Below are positions 4,465 through 20,737 of a stretch of 64,000 nucleotides of DNA, one piece after another (position 1 is the first letter of the stretch; every line of letters starts with the position of its first letter). The DNA comes from Oikopleura dioica. Its lineage: Eukaryota; Animalia; Chordata. The stretch is from the NCBI GenBank assembly GCA_907165135.1, contig OU015567.1, forward strand, positions 7,936,001-8,000,000, in the 5' to 3' direction. Made by a program: the position numbers and the translations under genes. A model generated the notes under the pieces. It was not told where the DNA came from. It was given only the letters and a program-made list of their open reading frames with translations, and searched no databases.

Positions 4465-5187
4465 ATGGAAGTACAAAGTCAGAGAAAAGAACAAGATGTC
4501 AAGCAAGAAAACGAAGTGGTACAACACCCCCGGGATAAAATCAAAGCTTCAAGAAAAACTTACAAAGTAATGTATGAGAAACTCCTTGATCAGCTGCTTA
4601 GGACACAACCAGGAAGATTCCACTCACACTGCAACGGTCTACTTTGGGCTATCGGTAACAATGAAGACGGAGCTCCAAAGTACAGTGCAAATCGGCTCAA
4701 GTCAATCATGGAAAAATCACCAGACGTGGATTACGACCATAATCTCCGAAAAGAAATTGAAGCTGGTGCTGAACGGAACAATAGTGAAGATTTTGTTATT
4801 GACCACACTCTCTTTGATTATTATGCTAGGTATGAGGACAGCGACTTCAACGTGCTCTACATCAGACGAACCGCCAAGGGAGGCGAACAACCATTTCCCG
4901 ATTATGACAAACGCGACAATTCCGACGACTCAGACGACAATTTCTTCGAATCAGATGACGACATCAGTGAAGACAGTGACAGGACCGTATCTGTGCGAAT
5001 CGGAGAGCCAGATGAAAGTGAATCAAGCTGCAGCTGTATCAACTTATTACTCGAGGGGAATGACACCAACAGTGAGTACTCAGACGAGAGCACAGACGAC
5101 GACAGCAGGGATGGGTCATATGATGAGAGACTTGCAAAGGAAGAGACAGATGCGGATGCAACGGCTAAAGCGACTAAAGGTGCTTGA
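4465..5187 (+). CDS. Orphan protein with acidic C-terminal half (viral-element gene)
   Basis: ORF 4456..5187 with first ATG at 4465. Globular-looking N-terminal part followed by D/E/S-rich tail. Divergent from the gene starting at 3945. Confidence 0.5.
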   Translation: MEVQSQRKEQDVKQENEVVQHPRDKIKASRKTYKVMYEKLLDQLLRTQPGRFHSHCNGLLWAIGNNEDGAPKYSANRLKSIMEKSPDVDYDHNLRKEIEAGAERNNSEDFVIDHTLFDYYARYEDSDFNVLYIRRTAKGGEQPFPDYDKRDNSDDSDDNFFESDDDISEDSDRTVSVRIGEPDESESSCSCINLLLEGNDTNSEYSDESTDDDSRDGSYDERLAKEETDADATAKATKGA

Positions 5188-11318: not shown

Positions 11319-11715
11319 GCTCACTACTGTATGAACAGTATCTCTACATAGTGTTAAGCAGAAAATCTCTTGTCTTCATTTTCCCTTTTTTCAAACAAAA
11401 AATGCAAAAACGAACCGATACAAAATATTTTTCTATAGACGTTCAACGGAAAAAATTCCAACTTTTACTTTCTCGATATTTTATTTCTGTCATTTTCCTG
11501 CTTATTTCTTTTGTTTTTCCTTTTTTCTTCAGCCATGCTTATCCCTCGCAGCTCAAACTTTCACCGTTTATTCTTTACAAAAAAATCATATAACAGGAAA
11601 ATATATAAAAGTATATTTGAAAACCGCGTCCTTTTCATTCCTCCAGATTCAACAAAAATAAGCATGAAACCATTCGAGTTCGATTCTAATTTTTTAAAAG
11701 CAAAGGTTTAAGAAA

Positions 11716-14700
11716 ATGGGAATGCTAGAAGCATTCAACCTCGCTCAGACAAAAGCACTGAATCTTTTGAATCCGTTGAAGTTCTTCCAGGGCGTCGGCA
11801 AGCCATCTTCGAACATGAATAAGTTCCTTCCAAAGAATCGTAAGAGCTGGGCAGAGTGTTACAAAAACGAAGAGATGATGCATGTTTACACGACTTCGAA
11901 AGCGGGCTTTCCAACGATGACCTGGATGCGCAGCTCGAAATACTCGATACATTACATTTTCTCAATTGCAGGCTTTGCCGCGTTTTTGAATTGGAAAGTC
12001 ATGTCCATGCAGCTTCAAAAGTGAGCAAAACTCAAGAAAATCATCAAGCTATTTTGATTTCAGAAACGAAGACTACAGAATGGAGCAAGGCGAACTGCAA
12101 GTGCCTCAGTACGCCACGAATCTCGGCTTTGGAATCCGCTTTCTTTACCTTGTAATTGGCATGGCTGCTCTTTCCGCGTTGCTTTTGCTTCCCTCGAGAA
12201 GAGTTCACAATATGTACATTCATATTCCAGACAAATCTCTCATCATAGAAAGCGGAAGGTTATTCGGTACAAAGCCGACGTACTATATTTTTGACGGAAA
12301 AGTAAGATGCCAATTTTCTTCTCATCTCATTAATTTATTGTAGGAAAACGAACGTGTCCGATATATTCTTCAAAAATCAAGGCAAAAAAGTGACAACATG
12401 AAAGGTCTGAGCACGGACAAAATCTCCAGTGGGACGCTTTCGTATCATCCGAAACTCGCTTATTGGGGTCAGACGCCCAGATTCTTTCCTAAATTCTTAT
12501 TCCTGGGCAAAGGAGAGTTTCTCCTGAATATGAACGAAATTAAGAGCATTCAGAAAAATATGCCTTTTGCTGGAGGTAAAAGTAGGGTGGGAATATTTTT
12601 TCCGAATGTTGGTCCCGAGGCTAGATATTTTTTGGGGTGAATTCTAGGGTCCTAAGAAGTCCCGAAAAAAAATTTGAGAAAAAATTTTTTTGTCGGAAAA
12701 AATTCTAGAGCCGATTGAAATTTAGTTTTTTTTAATCATGAAATATGGTTTTTTTTTCAAAAGGAAATGCCCTAGGGCAATTATTTTGTCCTTCTTTTTT
12801 CTTTTATTTTTTAGCCGCGCTTAAGCCGCAAAAAAGCCGCACCTCAAAGATGAAAATAATAGAAAAAATTATAGCTTTAACGCCAAAAATAAGTATTTTT
12901 TTTTCGTTTTTCATTTTTTTTTTGACTCAAAAACTAAGTGACCCCCTTAATAAACATAGTGATACCCTTATTTTTACAAAAAGATTCCCTAATTTGTATA
13001 TTTATATTTAAAAATCGTCAAAAATTAAAAATTCCTTTTTCAAAGGAAATTCGAAACACCATAAAGGTGTTCCTCGCCAAGAAATATGGGCATTGAGGGA
13101 ATCTTGAGGACCTGCGCGGGCCTTGGCCACACTGGCCATGTGCGCTGGGGCCTTGCGTAACTCGCGATGCGCAGAGGAGGATGCCTCCCGCGCCGCGATC
13201 CCAATGACTAACGAGGGATCGCGACGCAAAGAGCCTGAGACGGGCATGGTGGGGACATGGGGGGAAGCTCTGAGGGGCCTTGAAAAAAATTATTTTTGAC
13301 AAAAAAAATAATTTTGGCCTCTCTAGATCAGCCCGGACCATTGACAATGGTCAAAGCCGCATACGTGCGTACGTCCGTACATCTTCATCGCACGTATTAT
13401 CGGTTTCGACGCGCATCGTGAGTTGACAGGAAAGTCTGCTGGTGGGCCTAACTCGCCAGCAGGGATCCCTGTCCTAGGCGCTTTTGGCCCGGTATCAGTG
13501 GGACGGCCGACTGATATCGTGACCAGGGCAGGGCAGGGCAATGCAGGGCAGGGCAGGGCGGGGAAAGGCAAGGCAGGGAAGTGAAGGGCAGGGAAGTGAA
13601 GGGCAGGGCAGGGCGGGGAAGGGCAAGGCAGGGCAGAAAAGGGCACGGCAGGGCGGGGAAGGGCAAGGCAGGGCAGAGAAGGGCAAGGCAGGGAAGGGCA
13701 AGGCAGGAAAGGGCAAGGCAGGGAAGGGCAAGGCAGGGACGGGCAAAGCTGGGAAGGGCAAGGCATGGAAGGGCAAGTCAGGGAAGAGCAGGGCAAGGTA
13801 GGGCAGGGAAGGGCAAGGCAGCGCGAGGCATTGTAAGGCTCATCAATGCAGCGAATGGCATCGCACGGCTAGGCAACGCTGTGAGTAGCAGCGAAAGGCT
13901 GGGCAACGCAGTGAGAGGCAGTGCAGGGCTTGGCGTTGCAGTGAGAAGCCGCGCAAGCCTAGGCAACGCAGTGAAGGGCAGCGCAAGACTGGGCAACGCA
14001 GTGAGAGGCAATTCTGGGCTTGGCAACGCAGTGAGAGGCAGTGCTGGGCTTCGCATTGCAGTGAACCAGCGCAAGCCTTGGCAACATAGGGAGGGGCAGC
14101 GCAAGGCTGGCCTTAGCAAGACAAAGTCGCGCGATCAAGCTATCCTTTCCGAATGAAAATAAAGGCAACTTTCTACAAGCAACAAACAAGAACAATAATC
14201 TCGAAAGACAAGGCATATGAGCGATCTATGATTTATTCAGAGAAAAGCACAGAATGGTAAGCAAGAAAGATACTTTTCTTGTGCTGCTTGCGCTTCTTGT
14301 TTGCCTCTTTGACTTTGTTCGCCGCAGTCTCCTTCTGCTCATCGGTCATTTTAAGTCGAATCGCAGAGGTAAATGAATCGTAAGCTTCATCGCGTGTGAC
14401 CACTCCGAAATCGGCAACAACTGCGTTCGCCTTCGTGAATGCCTGGAAAGCAGCATCGAACTAATGAGGGAGGTTAGTTTCATGAAACCAAAAAGTCCTC
14501 TTTTACCTTCGAAGCATCCTTTGGTAGTGCATCAAGTGCAACCGCAAGTTCCGTAAGCCCTTGGAGACGAGCCTTAAGACTTGCCTCTTTGTCGATGGTC
14601 TCCATCATTTCGCTCACCGCAGCAGCGTGGGCAGACTTCCTAACATCGGAGCCCCGCTTTTCATCTGCATAGAGTCCTCGGAAGCAGCGACGTAGAGTCT

Positions 14701-17700
14701 CCTCATCGTCCATGAAGTGGCTCAGAGTTGAATTAATTCGGCAGCAGAAGACGGAGGCGAGCTTTGTTGAGTTGAACTTCGAGACAAAGGTGTCCTTGGC
14801 AATGCTGAAGCAGCGTTCAGCATGAACATTTGTCAATGCAACAAGGCCCTAGAAAAATGTATAAGGTACTGCTGACTCTGTGCAAGAGAGAGATGAAAAG
14901 TATCGCTTACCTCAATATCTTCCTTCGGAAGCTGCTCGAAACGGCTGAAAGTGGCAAGGAGAGGGTCGAGCTTTCGTCGAATTCGCTCATTCAAATCAGC
15001 AGCCCCACTTTCATCGTCAAGAATCGAGTTGAGAAGCTGAGAAAAGCCGGGAATCCCATTATCTCCGTTGCGCGTCATCGGATTGCCCTCAGAAGTTAGA
15101 AACAGTGCTGGGCATGCAGCGTCTCGTACAAGCTCGACAGTCTCTTGAAACGTTTTGATGAGCTTCTTGTATTCATCGAGCGTCGCTTCCTTCGCCGTTT
15201 CCGTCCAAAAGAAGAGGCAGAGATGATTCCAAAGGAGGTGCACACTCACAAGCTCAGGAATGTAGACTGGCTTGGCATTCTTCACGATTTCGGCCTCTTT
15301 TTCCTTGCCTTCGAGAGCCAAAAACTCAACGATCAAATCGTAAGTAACGCATCCGACAGCGGCATTACGGTAGAAAACACCAAATCGGATGTTCTGCTCC
15401 AGTTGAAACGGCGTGATTGGGATGTCGAGGCCTCTTTTAATTTTAACTCCTTCAAGAAACAACTGAAATTTGTTTCCCAGGCTACCTTGGTATCCATGTG
15501 TGCGGCTGGTGGTAAGAAGACCCTTCATCAAGACATAGCAGCGGGATGCTTCGTCGACAAGAGATGCCTCCAACGTGCGTTCAAGGTGCATGGCAGAATG
15601 CATCGAGCAAGTAAGATGCTCTCGCTTGAGACTATACTTCGTCGACAAAAACGCATCCACCTTCTTTGCAATCGATTTTGCCACAGCGGCGTTATCGTTG
15701 ATCAGAAATTTGCAATTCTTCGCAAATGTCGTCTGAAGATCGGCCGGAAGAGAGTCGAAGAGCTTGGTGAAGGCGTTCATCACAATGTCGACATTCTCCG
15801 TTGCCACCGGAAGCATCGCCATGCAGAAGTTCTGCTCACCTGGGACGAGAACAGTCACAACTTCATACTTCTGCATGGCCAGCTTGGACCCGTCAAAGCC
15901 AAGTCCAAACGGCTTGTCAAGACGAATGACTTCAAGGAGGTGTTCGCTATGGAGTCGTTCAGTGGCGCCAATCCAAATGCGAGCCGTTCGATCGGTGACG
16001 GAAGGAAAGCCGTACATTTCTGCGATAGCGATCATCGAGCGGCTCGAGACGTTCAATTCGACACAGCCTCGTACAAGTCGTGCTTTCGCGATCACATCAT
16101 CTTCGACACGTTCGTAGTTGCGTCCACCTACTGCAGGAAGATATTCTGAGCTTGTTGATGCTTGAGATGGGGCTGCTTGTGACGAAGGTGCTTGAGACGC
16201 GGGCGTTTCAGACGTCGAAAGTTGAGACATGGAGGTGGTGACTGCTTCGGTTGTATTCTGCCGGCGATGTCTGAGCGCTTCGACAAGCTTTTCGTAATCT
16301 TCCTTGCCAAAAGCATCAAATGATCGAATGAAATTGATCGCCTCCTGCTGATAATCGGTCGCCATTTCAACATCGATGATTGAAGACGCAGGCTCTCTAA
16401 AGAAATCATGAGTATTATGGAGGGACGCAAAGAGAAAAAATCTGAGAAAGGACCACTTACAGTTCAAGACGAGGTTTTTTCTCTTCCGGAATATCCTCTG
16501 CATAGACGATGAGACAAAAACCAGTGTACTCAGACGAGTTCTTCAGGAACTTGGTGACGAGAGCGACGTTGCGCTTGTGTTCCTTCGACTTCTTGGATGG
16601 AGGCAGCGGCCAACCACCGTTTTCCATGCGCGATTGTCCGTAGCGAGTCAAAAAGGTCTTGACATAGCCCTGGAGCGTTGCTTCAACAACATTCTTGCAC
16701 GCGGCTAACCCTTTCTTGAGCTGTCGAGAAAGGGCTTCTGCGTCGAGTTCTTGATCTACCTGATCTTTCGTCTTCCCAAGCACCTTGAAAATTTCATCAG
16801 ACGTAATTGGCTCTCCTGGAAAATAACAGGCGGAGAGATCGTTCGTGGTGGGCTTGCACAAAACCATTTTTCGTCGTTTTCGTCTTTCTCTTAGGTGATC
16901 TCTGGTAAAAATGATAAAAACTTCAAAAACATCGACTTATATAGGTTCAAACACCTACGCAATGTTCACTTTAGCCAATGAAAACACTCCAAATTTTCAA
17001 TCCTGACCAATCAGAACTCTTGAGGTAGACCAAACCATTCTAAACCGAACCATTCTTAAAATCGAACCAGTTACTATTTTCGACCACGTTGAGAAAGAGG
17101 GCGGTAATGAGCACAATGAGTCTGCAGTGGGGGAGACAACCTCAAATTGCCTCCGGCTAGATGGTCATCAATAAGCGGATGGCTCATCATTGAAAGCTTA
17201 TCCCTGACGGCTTATCCGTGAATGCTCACTCATTATGGCTTATCCCTTGATTGCTCATCGCGACGGGTAGACCAAACCATTAAGAACCGAACCATTCTTC
17301 AAATCGAACCAGTGACTATTTTTGACCACGCTGAGAAAGAGGGCGGTAATGAGCACAATGAGTCTGCAGTGAGGGAGACAACCCTATCTTGCCTAGAAGC
17401 ACCGTTTTCAGAGTGTGTTCAAGCTTATGTCATGCGAGCGCCGCGAACAGTATGAGTGGATGCTTGTTTGTTACCAGAGCAGCCTGGAAATAGACTGCGC
17501 TCTTTTCAGAAAGAACTGAAGAATCTTTTCCGAATAAGTGGTGACAAATGAAAGAGTGCGCTATTTCGAAACCTTTTCTTGAGAAATGCTTTTGGAAGCA
17601 ATTCATGGCGCTCGCCAAGGGCTATCAAGCCTTTCCTCTCGATTTTCTTGATTTCTTATGTGTTTAAAGCAGTAAATTAAGGTAAACAAGTGGTTGAAAT

Positions 17701-18545
17701 GGGTTTGTGCAGTCCAAGAATGTTTCCTTCTGATTTTGGCGAAATTTCACTTTTCAATTTTTATTCATCGATTTTTTTGAGTGGGTTCCGACAAATATTT
17801 TTTGGTCAATATAGGCTCAAAAAATGCGCAAGACGTTCTTCTTTATTGTATTGGTACTAACTCACTCCGGGACCACCCTTTTCTTAACAATTTTTTTCAA
17901 AAACCGATCGGATTTTATTGGAAAAATGGCATTGTCCATCTTCAGCGCCTCATATCTCTGAAATGAGTCATGATGACGTCATCATTCCAGTATTGAAAAT
18001 GAAGCTTAGACACTGTTCTTTGTTTAATTACTAATAATGATGACGTCATCATGACTCATCACAGAGATATGACTCATTTTTCCGATGACATGCCAAAAAA
18101 TCATGTTTTTTGCCATAAATCACGTCTCAGATGAAAATTTTCGACGAAACTTCGGGAATGTAATTTTTAGGACCTAACAAATCTACCAAGACCATTCGGA
18201 CCTATTTTCACCGAAAGTGGAAAAAATATTCCCACCCTAGGTAAAAGTCTAAATCGCTCGTTCTCCTTGTTAAAATTAATCTTAGACATTATAAAAGGCC
18301 TTTTGGAATATCATTCTCAAGACTCCTTCACTCTCAGCAGACGGGAAGCCATGACAAGTGGAGAAGAAGTCAGCAGAAATAAAATTCTAGCTCCTCTTTT
18401 GTATTTCTTTTCGATGTCAATTCTGTTATATTCTAACCAAGATGTGTTTCTTCAAAACGAGTCTATTTCATATCCAGATAATGCTATTGGCACGGCTGGT
18501 TATAAGAAATTAGTCAGTAATCTTGGTACTGTGACGGATGAATAA
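11716..18545 (+). CDS. Two-TM membrane protein, possibly TMEM70/186/223 family; interrupted by the hAT element, last exon(s) beyond 18240
   Basis: Exons at 11716, 12062 and 12343 splice in frame. Two hydrophobic segments followed by SRRVHNMYIHIPDKSLIIESGRLFG. Removing the hAT plus one TSD joins ...MPFAG to the frame of ORF 18267..18545. Confidence 0.45.
13524..14110. repeat. G-rich minisatellite inside the hAT: (GGGCA)n-like 5/10-mers, then about 8 degenerate 30-mers
   Basis: agggcagggc / aagggcaaggca arrays 13524-13820. 30-nt units ctNggcaacgcagtgagaggcagtgcNggg at about 13865-14110. Confidence 0.95.
14233..16867 (-). CDS. hAT transposase, 4 exons, about 820 aa
   Basis: Introns 16460-16397 (64 nt), 14910-14849 (62 nt) and 14506-14461 (46 nt) are GT-AG and frame-preserving. 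Candidate DDE residues in FDGS, NDNA and AERCFS, plus the CxxH motif (CSMH). Confidence 0.9.
17024..17383. repeat. Two 118-bp direct repeats (17024-17141 and 17266-17383) upstream of the transposase
   Basis: Both copies read GGTAGACCAAACCATT...GAGAAAGAGGGCGGTAATGAGCACAATGAGTCTGCAGTG...GAGACAACC with few substitutions. Confidence 0.9.
17952..18070. repeat. 35-bp inverted repeat (subterminal hairpin) containing TGAGTCA and TGACGTCA motifs
   Basis: ATATCTCTGAAATGAGTCATGATGACGTCATCATT (17952-17986) pairs with 18036-18070, with 2 mismatches. Confidence 0.85.
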
Positions 18546-18780
18546 ATTACCTGTAAATCTATTGATGGGATTTTATTTAATGCTGAGACTTTTTATTTTT
18601 ATTGTTAAGAAAACATGCGTGGCTATGATTGTTTTATCGAAGAAAAGGCGTGGAAAGCCGTTCTACTAGCTGTGCAACTGTATTGTTTGGGGAGTTCAGC
18701 GCCATGGTTACAGAGCAAATTCTGAGCTTGCTTGATACATGAAGAGTTGAAAAGTTGAGAACAAGTGAAGAGGAACCACG

Positions 18781-20624
18781 ATGGCTCAGGAGAGGAAATT
18801 TTAATTTTTGATGGTAAAGATTCAAAATGTTCGATTTGCTACCAGAAAATCATCCTCTGATAGATGCATTCGCTTCGAGACTGGTACCAGGCCAATGAGA
18901 ATATTATGGGAGATGCTTCTAACCAGCGGTTTGATGCCAATGCGACAAAGGTAAGAAAATAACTGAATTCCAGTATCTTTGGAATCAAGGAAGACTCACT
19001 CGACTCATTTTCTGCTTTCAGTTTGCAGCTCGACGAACTGTGAATGAAACGGATAATCAGACGAAATGGGATAAATACTTGAACGACTGCAGACTGGATG
19101 ATCGACTGGTGCAGATTGAGCAATGGCGGTGCGAGCTCGAGAGAGTTCTTGGAAATGCCGATGCTGAGATCAATCTTCTGGCTAGAATGAAAGATGATTG
19201 CGATGCGGCACTCGCTGCCAAGGCTATTCCAGAGTCTTGTTGCGCGGAATGCTTAGGTAATGATAGATAGATATCAACAATATATATTTATTTGAAAGCT
19301 TTATTCTTCATAGGCGGCCTCATAAATTTCATATGTCGATGACGTATTTTATTATGCAGGATATGCTTTCATTGAAAATATTCGGTTTGAATATTTTCAT
19401 TTTGAATGATCTATATTTTCAGGTTTGCGCGATGGTCGCCTCGAAATTGACGTCGTGAAAGATGTGGTACACGATGAACTTTGTAAAGAAGAAAAACTGA
19501 TCGAACGCGTGAAAGAAACGCTAGCAAAGGTAACTTATTAGTTGGACAAAGGGGCTTCTCTTTTTAATTTATGAATTTAATATTTGATTTCGGTAAATAT
19601 TTGAATATTTGTTTTAAGAGATCACAAGAGGCCTTTACGATGATAATGTCCCTAAAAGACGCCAAAAGAAGAGTGTCTGATGACCTCGAAGGAAAACATC
19701 ATGCACTTGACATCAATCGACAAGCTCTTGGACTCCATACTGAATCATCCGGACTGAGTTACATCAAGTGCGTTGTTATTTCTGCAACAGATTAGCATTT
19801 TCGAAATTTTAAGAGGCCTCGGGCGAGTTGCCCAAGGAAACTCGACTCCTGAATCCTGGAATGTGTTTTCAACAAAGAATCGCGACGAGTGCGAGGAAGA
19901 AATTCGCGCAAGCACTCAACTCAGAAGCCTGATCGAATCCGATATTCAGAACACAGCGAACGATTTGGAAGCTCAACGCATCGCTTGTGAGGTACTTACG
20001 TTAAATATTCATGACTCTAGTCAGCGATGAACCTTTTTTCGTTACTGACGGTCGTTCTAGTACGCTTTCCGCAATCGAATTCACGAATTTGAACAAACCA
20101 AGAGTGAGCTTGAATGGCAAAAGACCAGGACGGAAGAGGAACTTCAAGAAATCGAAGCGGAAATCAGAAATGTTGAAAACGCGATTGCTGCGAAAGCAGG
20201 GCCTCAAAAGGTCTGTTTCTCGCGATACGAGCTCAGAGCTGAATTGCCAGGAGTCGAGCATTGTAAGTTTAGGGATGTAGCTGAAGGTCTTTACGGCATT
20301 TTAGGCCGAGATGAACCTGCCTTTGGCTTGCACAATGAACTTCGTGAGCTGGAGAAGTCACTTGCTACTCTAAACTTGCGATTAGAAGAAGCTCAGAATA
20401 ACCGAGACCGGTAAGGCCGTGTTTAATCGGCATCTGGTTCTGAATTAGAATTGTTCAGACTCTGCCGTACCCTAGCAACAATCACCCATGATTTGGACTT
20501 GAAGCTGAACTCACTTCGCCTGGATCGCCAATGCCTTGAAGTTAGAAAGAAACTAACGGTGCCGCTCTACCGAACTCCAAGAATAGAGCCAACGATGGAC
20601 ACTCTTACTCGAACTTTTGCTTGA
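18781..20624 (+). CDS. TEKT2: Tektin-2, multi-exon
   Basis: NETDNQTKWD, EIDVVKD.VHDELCKE, NDLEAQRIACE, RPGVEHC, and C-terminal RKKLTVP align with TEKT2. The start exon is tentative. Confidence 0.85.
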
Positions 20625-20737
20625 AAATTTTATATCGCACTTTCGCAAAATCAAATATATCGAACTAAAATACAAAAAAAATGCATCTCCTTCTTTATTT
20701 GCAGTAGAAGAAAGTATCGAAAGCAAATGAGAACACA

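Follow-up and report, generated by a model that had tools for sequence, protein, structure and literature searches.

The window analysed here, a 64,000-nucleotide stretch of chr2 in the Okinawa assembly (OKI2018_I69) of Oikopleura dioica, contains a four-exon gene whose third intron is occupied by a full-length DNA transposon. The coordinates of the host gene, the transposon and their component parts are given in Table 1.

Table 1. Features of the host gene and of the transposon in its third intron (positions are those of the window)
Feature	Position	Strand	Remarks
Host exon 1	11716..12020	+	Start codon at 11716
Host exon 2	12064..12301	+	
Host exon 3	12344..12575	+	Ends ...GCTGGAG; end set by transcript alignment
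Left 8-bp target-site duplication copy, GGTAAAAG	12575..12582	+	Exon end set by transcript alignment
Present intron 3 if removed in one step, 5,710 nt	12576..18285	+	Boundaries from alignment; splicing itself predicted
hAT-type DNA transposon, full-length, 5,657 bp	12583..18239	-	Transposase gene antisense to host gene
Left terminal inverted repeat, 21 nt	12583..12603	.	Begins TAGGGTGGG; 100% complementary to right repeat
G-rich minisatellites within element	13524..14108	.	15/30-nt and 30/90-nt units; downstream of transposase gene
Transposase gene, 820 aa	14233..16867	-	Identical to NCBI model Oidioi.mRNA.OKI2018_I69.chr2.g6169.t1
Transposase exons	16867-16460, 16395-14911, 14848-14507, 14460-14236	-	Then stop codon
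Right terminal inverted repeat, 21 nt	18219..18239	.	Finishes CCCACCCTA; 100% complementary to left repeat
Right duplication copy, GGTAAAAG	18240..18247	+	Perfect match to left copy; G18240 completes AG
Native intron 3 before insertion, 45 nt	18241..18285	+	GT...TTAG; intron at same codon in another Oikopleura lineage
Host exon 4	18286..18545	+	Stop codon 18543-18545

The introns neighbouring intron 3 of the host gene are only 43 and 42 nt long, and the median intron in the O. dioica genome is 49 nt (PMC8008620). A Pfam search with the four exons, handled singly, returned no family, and a full-length search using the natural open reading frame of a contiguous transcript contig (L022) recovered only Oikopleura-type sequences, with no named homologue among them. 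The dN/dS ratio is 0.036 across 342 codons, exon 4 among them, and in a sister lineage the gene is co-transcribed with a downstream tektin gene. By sequence comparison, this is a four-exon gene that is both Oikopleura-specific and strongly constrained. Among the matches returned there was no NCBI-annotated host protein of 189-602 aa for this assembly, and there is therefore no visible sign that the annotators' model spans the element.

There is no doubt that the element, its ends and its target-site duplication are real, and no other copy in the assembly combines two ends with an intact transposase gene. The left duplication copy takes in base 12575, where host exon 3 ends, followed by a duplicate of the whole native 5' splice site, whose GT is at 12576-12577, whilst bases 18241-18247 of the right copy are the first seven bases of the original intron. 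Because the inverted repeats and the duplication are perfect, the insertion is indicated to be young. The element is most probably a recently active hAT transposon that is divergent in sequence.

Assignment of the element to the hAT superfamily (Hermes, Ac/Ds, hobo) draws on its ends, its target-site duplication and the predicted structure of its transposase. The 8-bp duplication is that of hAT elements, as are the short terminal repeats beginning YARNG (more narrowly YAGGG; here the 21-nt perfect repeats begin TAGGG). The hAT target pattern nTnnnnAn is matched at both positions by four of the five sites of the family, with the window site fitting at position 7 only, but five sites are too small a sample to establish a preference. 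The transposase gene has three short introns of ~46-64 nt. The AlphaFold model of its product (pLDDT 70 overall, high at residues 230-820) has an RNase H-like core interrupted by a large all-helical insertion, as in Hermes. When this model was compared with the PDB using Foldseek, 12 matches were obtained at E <= 0.001 and the best 10 listed were all Hermes transposase (E 6.5e-6 to 5.5e-5 over 516-575 columns), albeit with modest TM-scores of 0.29-0.45 (0.37-0.45 when normalised to the target); the P element comes after Hermes, with E 1.4e-3. Residues D304, D370, C399xxH402 and E642, corresponding to the D, D, CxxH and C-terminal E(R)xF(S/G) motifs of hAT transposases, are conserved across relatives where aligned and lie on the expected strands and helix of the model, and we infer a catalytic role for them.

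Set against these likenesses, the family is tiny and its transposase has few relatives (only 21 among 1.84 billion representative proteins) and no detectable Pfam domains. Pfam searches of the transposase open reading frames, the annotated 820-aa protein and 17 relatives returned no family, hAT dimerisation and BED domains included, and a genome scan with PF05699 (Dimer_Tnp_hAT) found other hAT families but did not list the window element. Sequence searches of the PDB with phmmer and with a profile gave nothing meaningful, and the ESM Atlas offered weak leads only (DUF659 and ZBED1-like clusters at 0.81). We read the missing Pfam match as a sign of divergence, not of exclusion from hAT. With its modelled fold, its motifs and the features of the element taken together, the transposase is a divergent member of the superfamily.

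An initial annotation of this DNA had drawn attention to the way in which the element could be spliced out exactly, and the geometry that it described is borne out. The duplication GGTAAAAG holds a 5' splice site, and the final A of the right repeat together with the first duplication base, G, forms an AG (18239-18240) directly before GTAAAAG. The unit running from GT (12576) to AG (18240) is 5,665 nt long, which is the length of the element with a single duplication copy added; by simple arithmetic, therefore, removing 12576..18240 gives back the pre-insertion sequence. The next 45 nt (18241-18285) likewise run from GT to AG and are stop-free in frame, as part of a run of 101 codons (18240-18542) without a stop. 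Exact spliceability is by itself unremarkable, however, because, for an element ending in TA, 3.3% of the 8-mers in the window would permit exact removal as a GT-AG unit when a single strand is considered, and 6.7% when both are. The geometry is the automatic result of an A-ended element duplicating a G/GT splice site (here and below, / marks a junction) and reflects no evolved introner function. What is unusual about the insertion is that its target was a genuine 5' splice site.

The same annotation had also offered, as one of two alternatives, that an element landing in coding sequence had become a brand-new intron, using the GT of the duplication and the AG formed by the last element base and the duplication. 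The exactness of the GT(12576)...AG(18240) unit is in keeping with this, as is the fact that the following 45 nt, being in frame and stop-free, could in principle be read as exon. Comparison with other Oikopleura lineages in effect refutes it, however. A genomic contig from another lineage (L023) is transposon-free and has introns at the same three positions, that at the third being 49 nt long and at the same codon. The transcript contig L022, which is 98-100% identical to L023, is without any intron and joins the exons at the same point, and its alignment to the window is interrupted at 12575 / 18289. The sequence ...MPFAG/DVVKGLL... is found in the protein P0002 and also in P0007, an independent protein from a marine catalogue, such that two independent transcript-derived sequences (L022 and P0007) place the exon join exactly at ...PFAG/D... 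and the 45 nt are absent from all three sister-lineage transcripts (L022, P0002 and P0007). In the lineage nearest to the window, P0001 is a genomic read-through of the empty site, in which the segment at the intron position has diverged in sequence and differs in length, whereas the flanking exons are conserved. As judged from these alignments, the 45-nt segment is a native, conserved intron that pre-existed the insertion, at a position shared with an element-free lineage. Of the earlier interpretation, therefore, the AG/GT junction placed before a native intron stands and the gain of an intron does not.

Very probably, then, a divergent and recently active hAT transposon landed in the 5' splice site of a 45-nt intron that was already there and enlarged that intron, with no new intron being made. 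Because the 8-bp staggered cut would have spanned the exon-intron boundary, taking in one base of exon and seven of intron, repair would have duplicated the entire 5' splice-site motif. Intron 3 would thus have grown from 45 to 5,710 nt with its native signals all intact: the exon end and GTAAAAG upstream and, downstream, the original 45 nt with their branch region and 3' end. Three routes could lead to a correct mRNA. Bases 12576-18285 could be taken out in one step; 12576-18240 could be removed first, regenerating the 5' site, followed by the 45 nt; or the 45 nt could go first, followed by 12576-18240. We incline to the view that correct splicing persists in the carrier allele, with the one-step route as the simplest way.

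How far the second of these routes might be used bears on the suggestion, also made in the initial annotation, that the AG/GT junction is a recursive splice site in the making. The geometry is as described but the need for recursion falls away, since splicing directly from the upstream 5' splice-site copy to the native 3' end, which the insertion left untouched, would clear the whole stretch at once and make a second step optional. The candidate ratchet junction, ...TTCCCACCCTAG/GTAAAAG, juxtaposes a polypyrimidine-AG with a GTRAGT-like sequence, with C or T in 10 of the 15 upstream bases; in pyrimidine content it falls within the top three of the 18 AGGT sites of the intron, behind that at 16894 (14/15). 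The 5' site that it would regenerate is identical to the native one, and local 3' ends likewise end in TAG or CAG. Against this, both native ends are intact, the tract ahead of the AG is C-rich where those of local introns are T-rich, and known ratchet points lie in far longer introns (bioRxiv 10.1101/006163; PMC8605326). That the intron is mainly removed in two steps via a functional zero-length exon at 18240/18241 thus seems unlikely.

A disruptive insertion is somewhat less doubtful than this, though still on the improbable side. The allele would be a null or hypomorph, either because its transcript was polyadenylated too early or spliced cryptically into the element, or because the antisense transposase gene interfered with it, and would persist only through its recency, perhaps in heterozygous form or after drift to fixation in a laboratory line. 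On the host strand, the element has three poly(A)-type hexamers (12949, 13024 and 14158), and no more than ~130 nt separates the upstream 5' site from T-rich ...TAG sites, which could capture it in a species that normally splices introns of ~49 nt; the present intron would be ~115x the genome median. The lack of a normal-length host protein among the NCBI annotation matches points in the same direction, and the perfection of the inverted repeats and duplication indicates an insertion too young to have been much exposed to selection. The four exons are nevertheless intact and the native splice signals are all kept and, because the host gene is under strong long-term constraint and is co-transcribed with tektin in the sister lineage, a terminating insertion would be costly.

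The remainder of the family offers little to suggest that such insertions are a habit. In the 64 Mb assembly it occupies five insertion sites, which hold a full copy, a truncated one that lies upstream of a gene, a deletion derivative in non-coding-looking DNA and two fragments. The copy at C3:2290332-2294277 has its own perfect 8-bp duplication, GTTTGGAA. At three other loci the transposon was removed in silico and the result scanned for open reading frames spanning the empty site. The expectation that duplications of the family would be enriched for GGT starts is not upheld, as none of the four other sites starts with GGT and none is exactly spliceable (0/4 in each case). In a related MITE family, 30 sampled copies (29 sites scored) were exactly spliceable at chance frequency. 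The idea of an introner-like route to intron gain consequently finds no support in the five-site family, and the related MITEs are at chance level. In a separate observation, a 533-bp MITE lies inside a DPP8/9-type exon, with an exact GC...AG excision path, and a 1.56-kb element lies inside a multicopper-oxidase exon; the exonic insertion is partly confirmed in both cases.

It could still be argued that the hit in the window is no coincidence, hAT insertions being drawn to, or preferentially kept at, sequences resembling 5' splice sites. A half-site of the family (L002) reads GGTAAG on the opposite strand, and of 22 perfect MITE duplications, 4 have GGT at the start or ACC at the end, where a frequency of 1.8% would be expected (P = 5.5e-4). 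The half-site is, however, ~230 nt upstream of the start codon of a transporter gene, away from any visible exon end, no convincing exon-intron junction is seen at the four GGT-start MITE sites, and the family amounts to five sites only; we regard such a preference as quite improbable. Three candidates are set aside: the L002 half-site as a second splice-site hit, given its position upstream of the neighbouring gene; the GGT-start MITE duplications as marks of 5' splice sites, for want of convincing junctions; and the C3 deletion derivative as an insertion at an exon end, its flanks looking non-coding.

The significance of the locus lies elsewhere than in intron birth, of which it is not an example, the underlying idea being in any case established for introners. 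A transposon that makes a staggered cut and lands on a 5' splice site duplicates rather than destroys that site, leaving the gene with its native signals, and the locus thus shows why some genic insertions may be tolerable even in a genome with 49-nt introns. It also provides a concrete case for asking whether O. dioica splices an intron ~100x the normal size, and by which route (Okinawa RNA-seq libraries exist for embryos, immature adults and adults, PMC8008620), and it brings to light a new and very divergent hAT family, invisible to Pfam and with seemingly one autonomous copy in the Okinawa assembly. A broader reading, in which the hAT-type elements of O. dioica, autonomous copies and MITEs alike, are in the process of becoming introns, is doubtful. 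Were it true, duplications and element ends would supply GT-AG or species-tolerated GC/GA-AG sites, exonic and splice-site insertions would survive in an extremely gene-dense genome, and the very high proportion of intron positions in Oikopleura that are lineage-specific would be due in part to DNA transposons. The window would then represent a splice-site-duplicating variant, with the DPP8/9 and multicopper-oxidase insertions as true gains in progress. Both of these exonic insertions are of hAT type and lie elsewhere on the chromosome that carries the window, and they are more valuable leads than the window locus.

Introner elements were reportedly described by Huff and colleagues in 2016 as intron-creating DNA transposons that use splice sites supplied by the duplication. 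At the window locus, too, the duplication supplies one splice site (GT being its bases 2-3), the other is formed where the element end meets the duplication (AG being the last element base and duplication base 1), and exact excision would keep the mRNA unchanged. Introners have since been documented as DNA transposons that create introns with duplication-supplied splice sites (Gozashti et al. 2022 PMC9860276; 2025 PMC12130899; review PMC11282704), and this route to intron gain, autonomous introners included, is already published (PMC9860276, PMC12130899, PMC11282704). Unlike introners, which are found as many near-identical copies forming introns in unrelated genes, the window family has not multiplied in genes (five sites in 64 Mb); the position was already intron-bearing, so that nothing was gained; and the element is a 5.7-kb autonomous copy whose excision is predicted from sequence, whereas introners are mostly short and non-autonomous. 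Closer at hand, a review's summary of work on another larvacean tunicate, Fritillaria borealis, describes many introns that derive from MITEs, occupy species-specific positions and have AG-AC or AG-AT ends (Henriet et al. 2019, via PMC11282704). As far as that summary goes, the two have in common DNA transposons in genes, with spliceosomal removal being the feature of Fritillaria, but the window case is single, canonical GT-AG and at an old intron position.

Two further systems bear on the junction itself. Like the ratchet points of Drosophila (bioRxiv 10.1101/006163; PMC8605326), the window locus has juxtaposed 3' and 5' sites (AG/GTAAAAG) that would regenerate a 5' site after the first step. 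The window junction, however, was made at once by a transposon duplication, is young and is not conserved; it lies 45 nt from the 3' end of its intron rather than deep in a very long one, is not required for correct splicing and is a candidate site only. The stwintrons of fungi (PMC12403724) are alike in that the donor of an external intron harbours an internal, intron-like unit and consecutive reactions give one clean junction. In [D1,2] stwintrons, however, the internal intron splits the donor between bases 1 and 2, making two steps obligatory, whereas the internal unit in the window adjoins an intact duplicate donor and a single step would be enough.

The 5,657-bp element is bounded by 21-nt terminal inverted repeats that are 100% complementary, the left starting TAGGGTGGG and the right finishing CCCACCCTA, and is flanked on both sides by a perfect 8-bp duplication, GGTAAAAG (table). 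The GT at 12576 and the AG at 18239-18240 form the ends of a 5,665-nt unit, the removal of which regains the uninterrupted sequence, and the 45 nt that directly follow (18241-18285) also run from GT to AG, in frame and stop-free. All of this was correctly described in the initial annotation, which read the arrangement as intron gain or as a recursive splice site in the making. On the evidence below that interpretation is partly supported: the AG/GT geometry is real (the slash marks a junction), and what it stands ahead of is a native intron rather than a new one.

The host gene lies between a BSD-domain gene on one side and a tektin gene on the other. In L023, a genomic contig from another Oikopleura lineage, introns are found at the same three host-gene positions as in the window, the third being 49 nt long and transposon-free (GGAG/GTCAGT...GAAG/AT). 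A transcript contig from another lineage, L022, matches L023 in six colinear blocks of 98-100% identity, lacks every intron of the host and tektin genes and is a spliced, polycistronic transcript; aligned to the window, it breaks off at 12575 and picks up again at 18289. Searching with the exon 4 region identified marine-metagenome proteins, among them the following two. One (P0001) is a read-through of the empty site (...MPFAG, 14 poorly conserved residues, DVIKGLL...), its flanking exon residues being nearly identical to those of the window and its middle segment different in sequence and length. The other (P0002) reads ...MPFAG/DVVKGLL... with no residues between, a junction shared by the independent catalogue protein P0007. 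Taken together, these comparisons identify 18241-18285 as a native, conserved intron, and the proposal of intron gain falls. The element went in across the exon-intron boundary, its target being the final base of the exon and bases 1-7 of the intron. The gene itself has a dN/dS of 0.036 (342 codons, compared exon by exon with L022, with synonymous divergence near-saturated).

Compared with L023 and with window 11413-20642, L022:1-3041 carries the host gene, an intergenic spacer and the downstream tektin gene on one spliced metatranscriptome contig, which points to polycistronic (operon) transcription in the sister lineage. An insertion in the host intron that caused termination could therefore affect tektin as well.

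Coordinates of the features discussed (window positions unless a scaffold, C, of the same assembly, G000, or a locus, L, drawn from it is named)
Feature	Position	Strand	Remarks
Host gene, four exons	11716-12020, 12064-12301, 12344-12575, 18286-18545	plus	introns 1 and 2 of 43 and 42 nt
Flanking duplications	12575-12582, 18240-18247		8 bp
Element (family copy 1)	12583-18239		full length; terminal inverted repeats and duplication
Transposase gene, four exons	16867-16460, 16395-14911, 14848-14507, 14460-14236	minus	introns ~46-64 nt
Minisatellites	13524-14108		within element
Palindrome	17950-18072		right subterminal region of element
Family copy 2	chr2:9,888,771-9,893,321		DNA 94% identical; broken off after element position 4678
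Family copy 3	C3:2,290,332-2,294,277		deletion derivative; both ends and duplication GTTTGGAA
Family copies 4, 5			two right-end fragments
DPPIV_N-exon MITE	L025:3015-3563 (G000:C5:10434314-10434862)	minus	second copy C5:10568412-10568944
Multicopper-oxidase-exon element	L026:3293-4866 (G000:C5:~1284293-1285866)		~20 nt upstream of GTAAGT donor
Conventional hAT family	G000:C1:636914, 641782, 732634, 737494; C4:380299, 393172; C5:13847453		Pfam hAT dimerisation domain match

A staggered 8-bp cut across G/GTAAAAG followed by gap repair would leave one complete 5' splice-site copy on exon 3 and a second at the start of the original intron, itself left untouched. With A as the last base of the element and G as the first of the duplication, the second GT is directly preceded by AG; this adjacency is automatic for the target position and is not an evolved property. 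Three routes could lead to the predicted mRNA ...GGAG/ACATT...: removal of 5,710 nt in one step, removal of the 5,665-nt unit and then the 45-nt intron (the 'ratchet' of the initial annotation), or the same two steps in reverse order. Since both native intron ends are intact, one-step removal is considered the simplest. Several features speak against smooth splicing: the enlarged intron would be ~115 times the genome median (49 bp in the 64.3-Mb, 19-scaffold Okinawa assembly, where 11% of introns are non-GT/AG; PMC8008620), poly(A)-type hexamers occur three times on the element's host strand, the upstream donor has T-rich ...TAG sites within ~130 nt of it, host and transposase genes run antisense to each other, and the protein-search matches included no host protein of normal length from the NCBI annotation.

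How unusual is exact excision? For a TA-ended element, 3.3% of the 8-mers in the window would permit it by GT-AG splicing on one strand and 6.7% on either, rising to 20.5% if Oikopleura G[ACG]-AG introns are included, and being 'exactly spliceable' is therefore unremarkable by itself. The element family is tiny, with five insertion sites, including the window copy, in the assembly searched (64.28 Mb, 19 scaffolds), of which the window represents chr2:7,936,001-8,000,000. In element orientation the targets are GGTAAAAG, GTTTGGAA, CTTACCAA, CTCGTCAG and GTTAGAAG, four of which fit nTnnnnAn (five sites only); neither a GGT start nor exact excision is found at any of the four sites besides that of the window copy. 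A wider set came from a related family of MITEs, 460-530 bp long with CAGGGTGG ends and present in at least 33 copies, in which exact excision is at chance level across 29 independent sites, both for GT-AG (1/29 against 2.7% expected) and for G[N]-AG (4/29 against 13.6%). The introner-like behaviour proposed for the element is thus not borne out. Among duplications from 30 copies of the ~460-bp family (L027-L056, on C1, C2, C4 and C5), 4 of 22 perfect ones have GGT at the start or ACC at the end (1.8% expected, P = 5.5e-4), which may reflect a mild target preference; no splice junctions were visible on inspection of such sites.

The second family copy (L002:6052-7551, G000:C5:~9893322-9894821) stops short of an SLC22-like transporter gene, ~230 nt before its start codon; the flanking sequence is GGTAAG when read on that gene's strand, with no exon end visible there. 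Two hAT-type insertions within coding exons elsewhere on the chromosome were partly confirmed. A 533-bp CAGGG-type MITE with duplication GCCTTGTT sits within a DPPIV_N-domain coding exon, where, on the gene strand, an exact GC...AG excision path (AAG/GC...AACAAG/GC) results from the duplication and the element ends; a 100% identical copy 134 kb away suggests that the gene region was duplicated, either segmentally or in the assembly. Within a multicopper-oxidase (Cu-oxidase_3) exon lies an element of 1,558 bp (ends CAGGGCTC, duplication GTCAAGAG), and here splicing from the GT starting the first duplication to an AG inside the second would take out 1,572 nt in frame with loss of two codons. If intron birth by hAT elements occurs in Oikopleura, it would show itself in these exons.

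The transposase gene encodes an annotated 820-aa protein (100% identical to NCBI Oidioi.mRNA.OKI2018_I69.chr2.g6169.t1, Oikopleura dioica), and its exons in the second family copy are 98-100% identical in protein, one 89% block excepted. Pfam found no family in this protein or 17 relatives, a whole-genome scan for the hAT dimerisation domain listed other hAT families and not this element, and exhaustive phmmer against 1.84 billion representatives gave 21 relatives in all, every one lacking a Pfam domain. The AlphaFold model, confident from residue 230 on, displays three strands, helix, strand, helix, strand (an RNase H-like core), a long all-helical insertion and a last helix. In Foldseek against the PDB, with 12 matches at E <= 0.001, the ten best-listed are all Hermes transposase (E 6.5e-6 to 5.5e-5, 516-575 columns), the next listed fold being the P element (1.4e-3). 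Conserved among relatives are D304 (first strand), D370 (after the fourth strand), a CxxH at 399-402 and E642 in a TNxxxERxF block. On structure, motifs, 8-bp duplications and YAGGG ends, with no match to curated sequence domains, we file the element as a divergent hAT. A conventional hAT family, of at least seven near-identical copies with 177-aa open frames, matches the Pfam dimerisation domain (39 bits) and therefore coexists with it.

The third transposase intron (14461-14506, minus) starts with GTAAAAG, a heptamer also found at the donor of the host intron. The stretch from the element's left end to the transposase stop codon holds G-rich minisatellites (15/30-nt units of CAGGGCAGGG type plus one of 30/90 nt), which account for a GC-skew spike at 12-14 kb. 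The palindrome (37-nt arms, 95% complementary, 49-nt loop, TGACGTCA motifs inside) is repeated over ~123 nt elsewhere, at several loci (C1, C4, C14) and in direct as well as inverted orientation, and given this recurrence may be a separate small repeat.

The locus thus combines a divergent hAT family with a transposon-enlarged intron, both of known kinds. AG/GT ratchet points are known from long introns of Drosophila (bioRxiv 10.1101/006163; PMC8605326). Introners, as published, act by duplication-assisted creation of splice sites (PMC11282704; PMC9860276); their presence in a tunicate, Styela clava, is reported, as are autonomous elements that generate introns (PMC12130899), and introns derived from MITEs occur in the larvacean Fritillaria, as cited in PMC11282704 (Henriet et al. 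2019). Unlike introners, the transposon described here went into an already existing intron, duplicating its donor.
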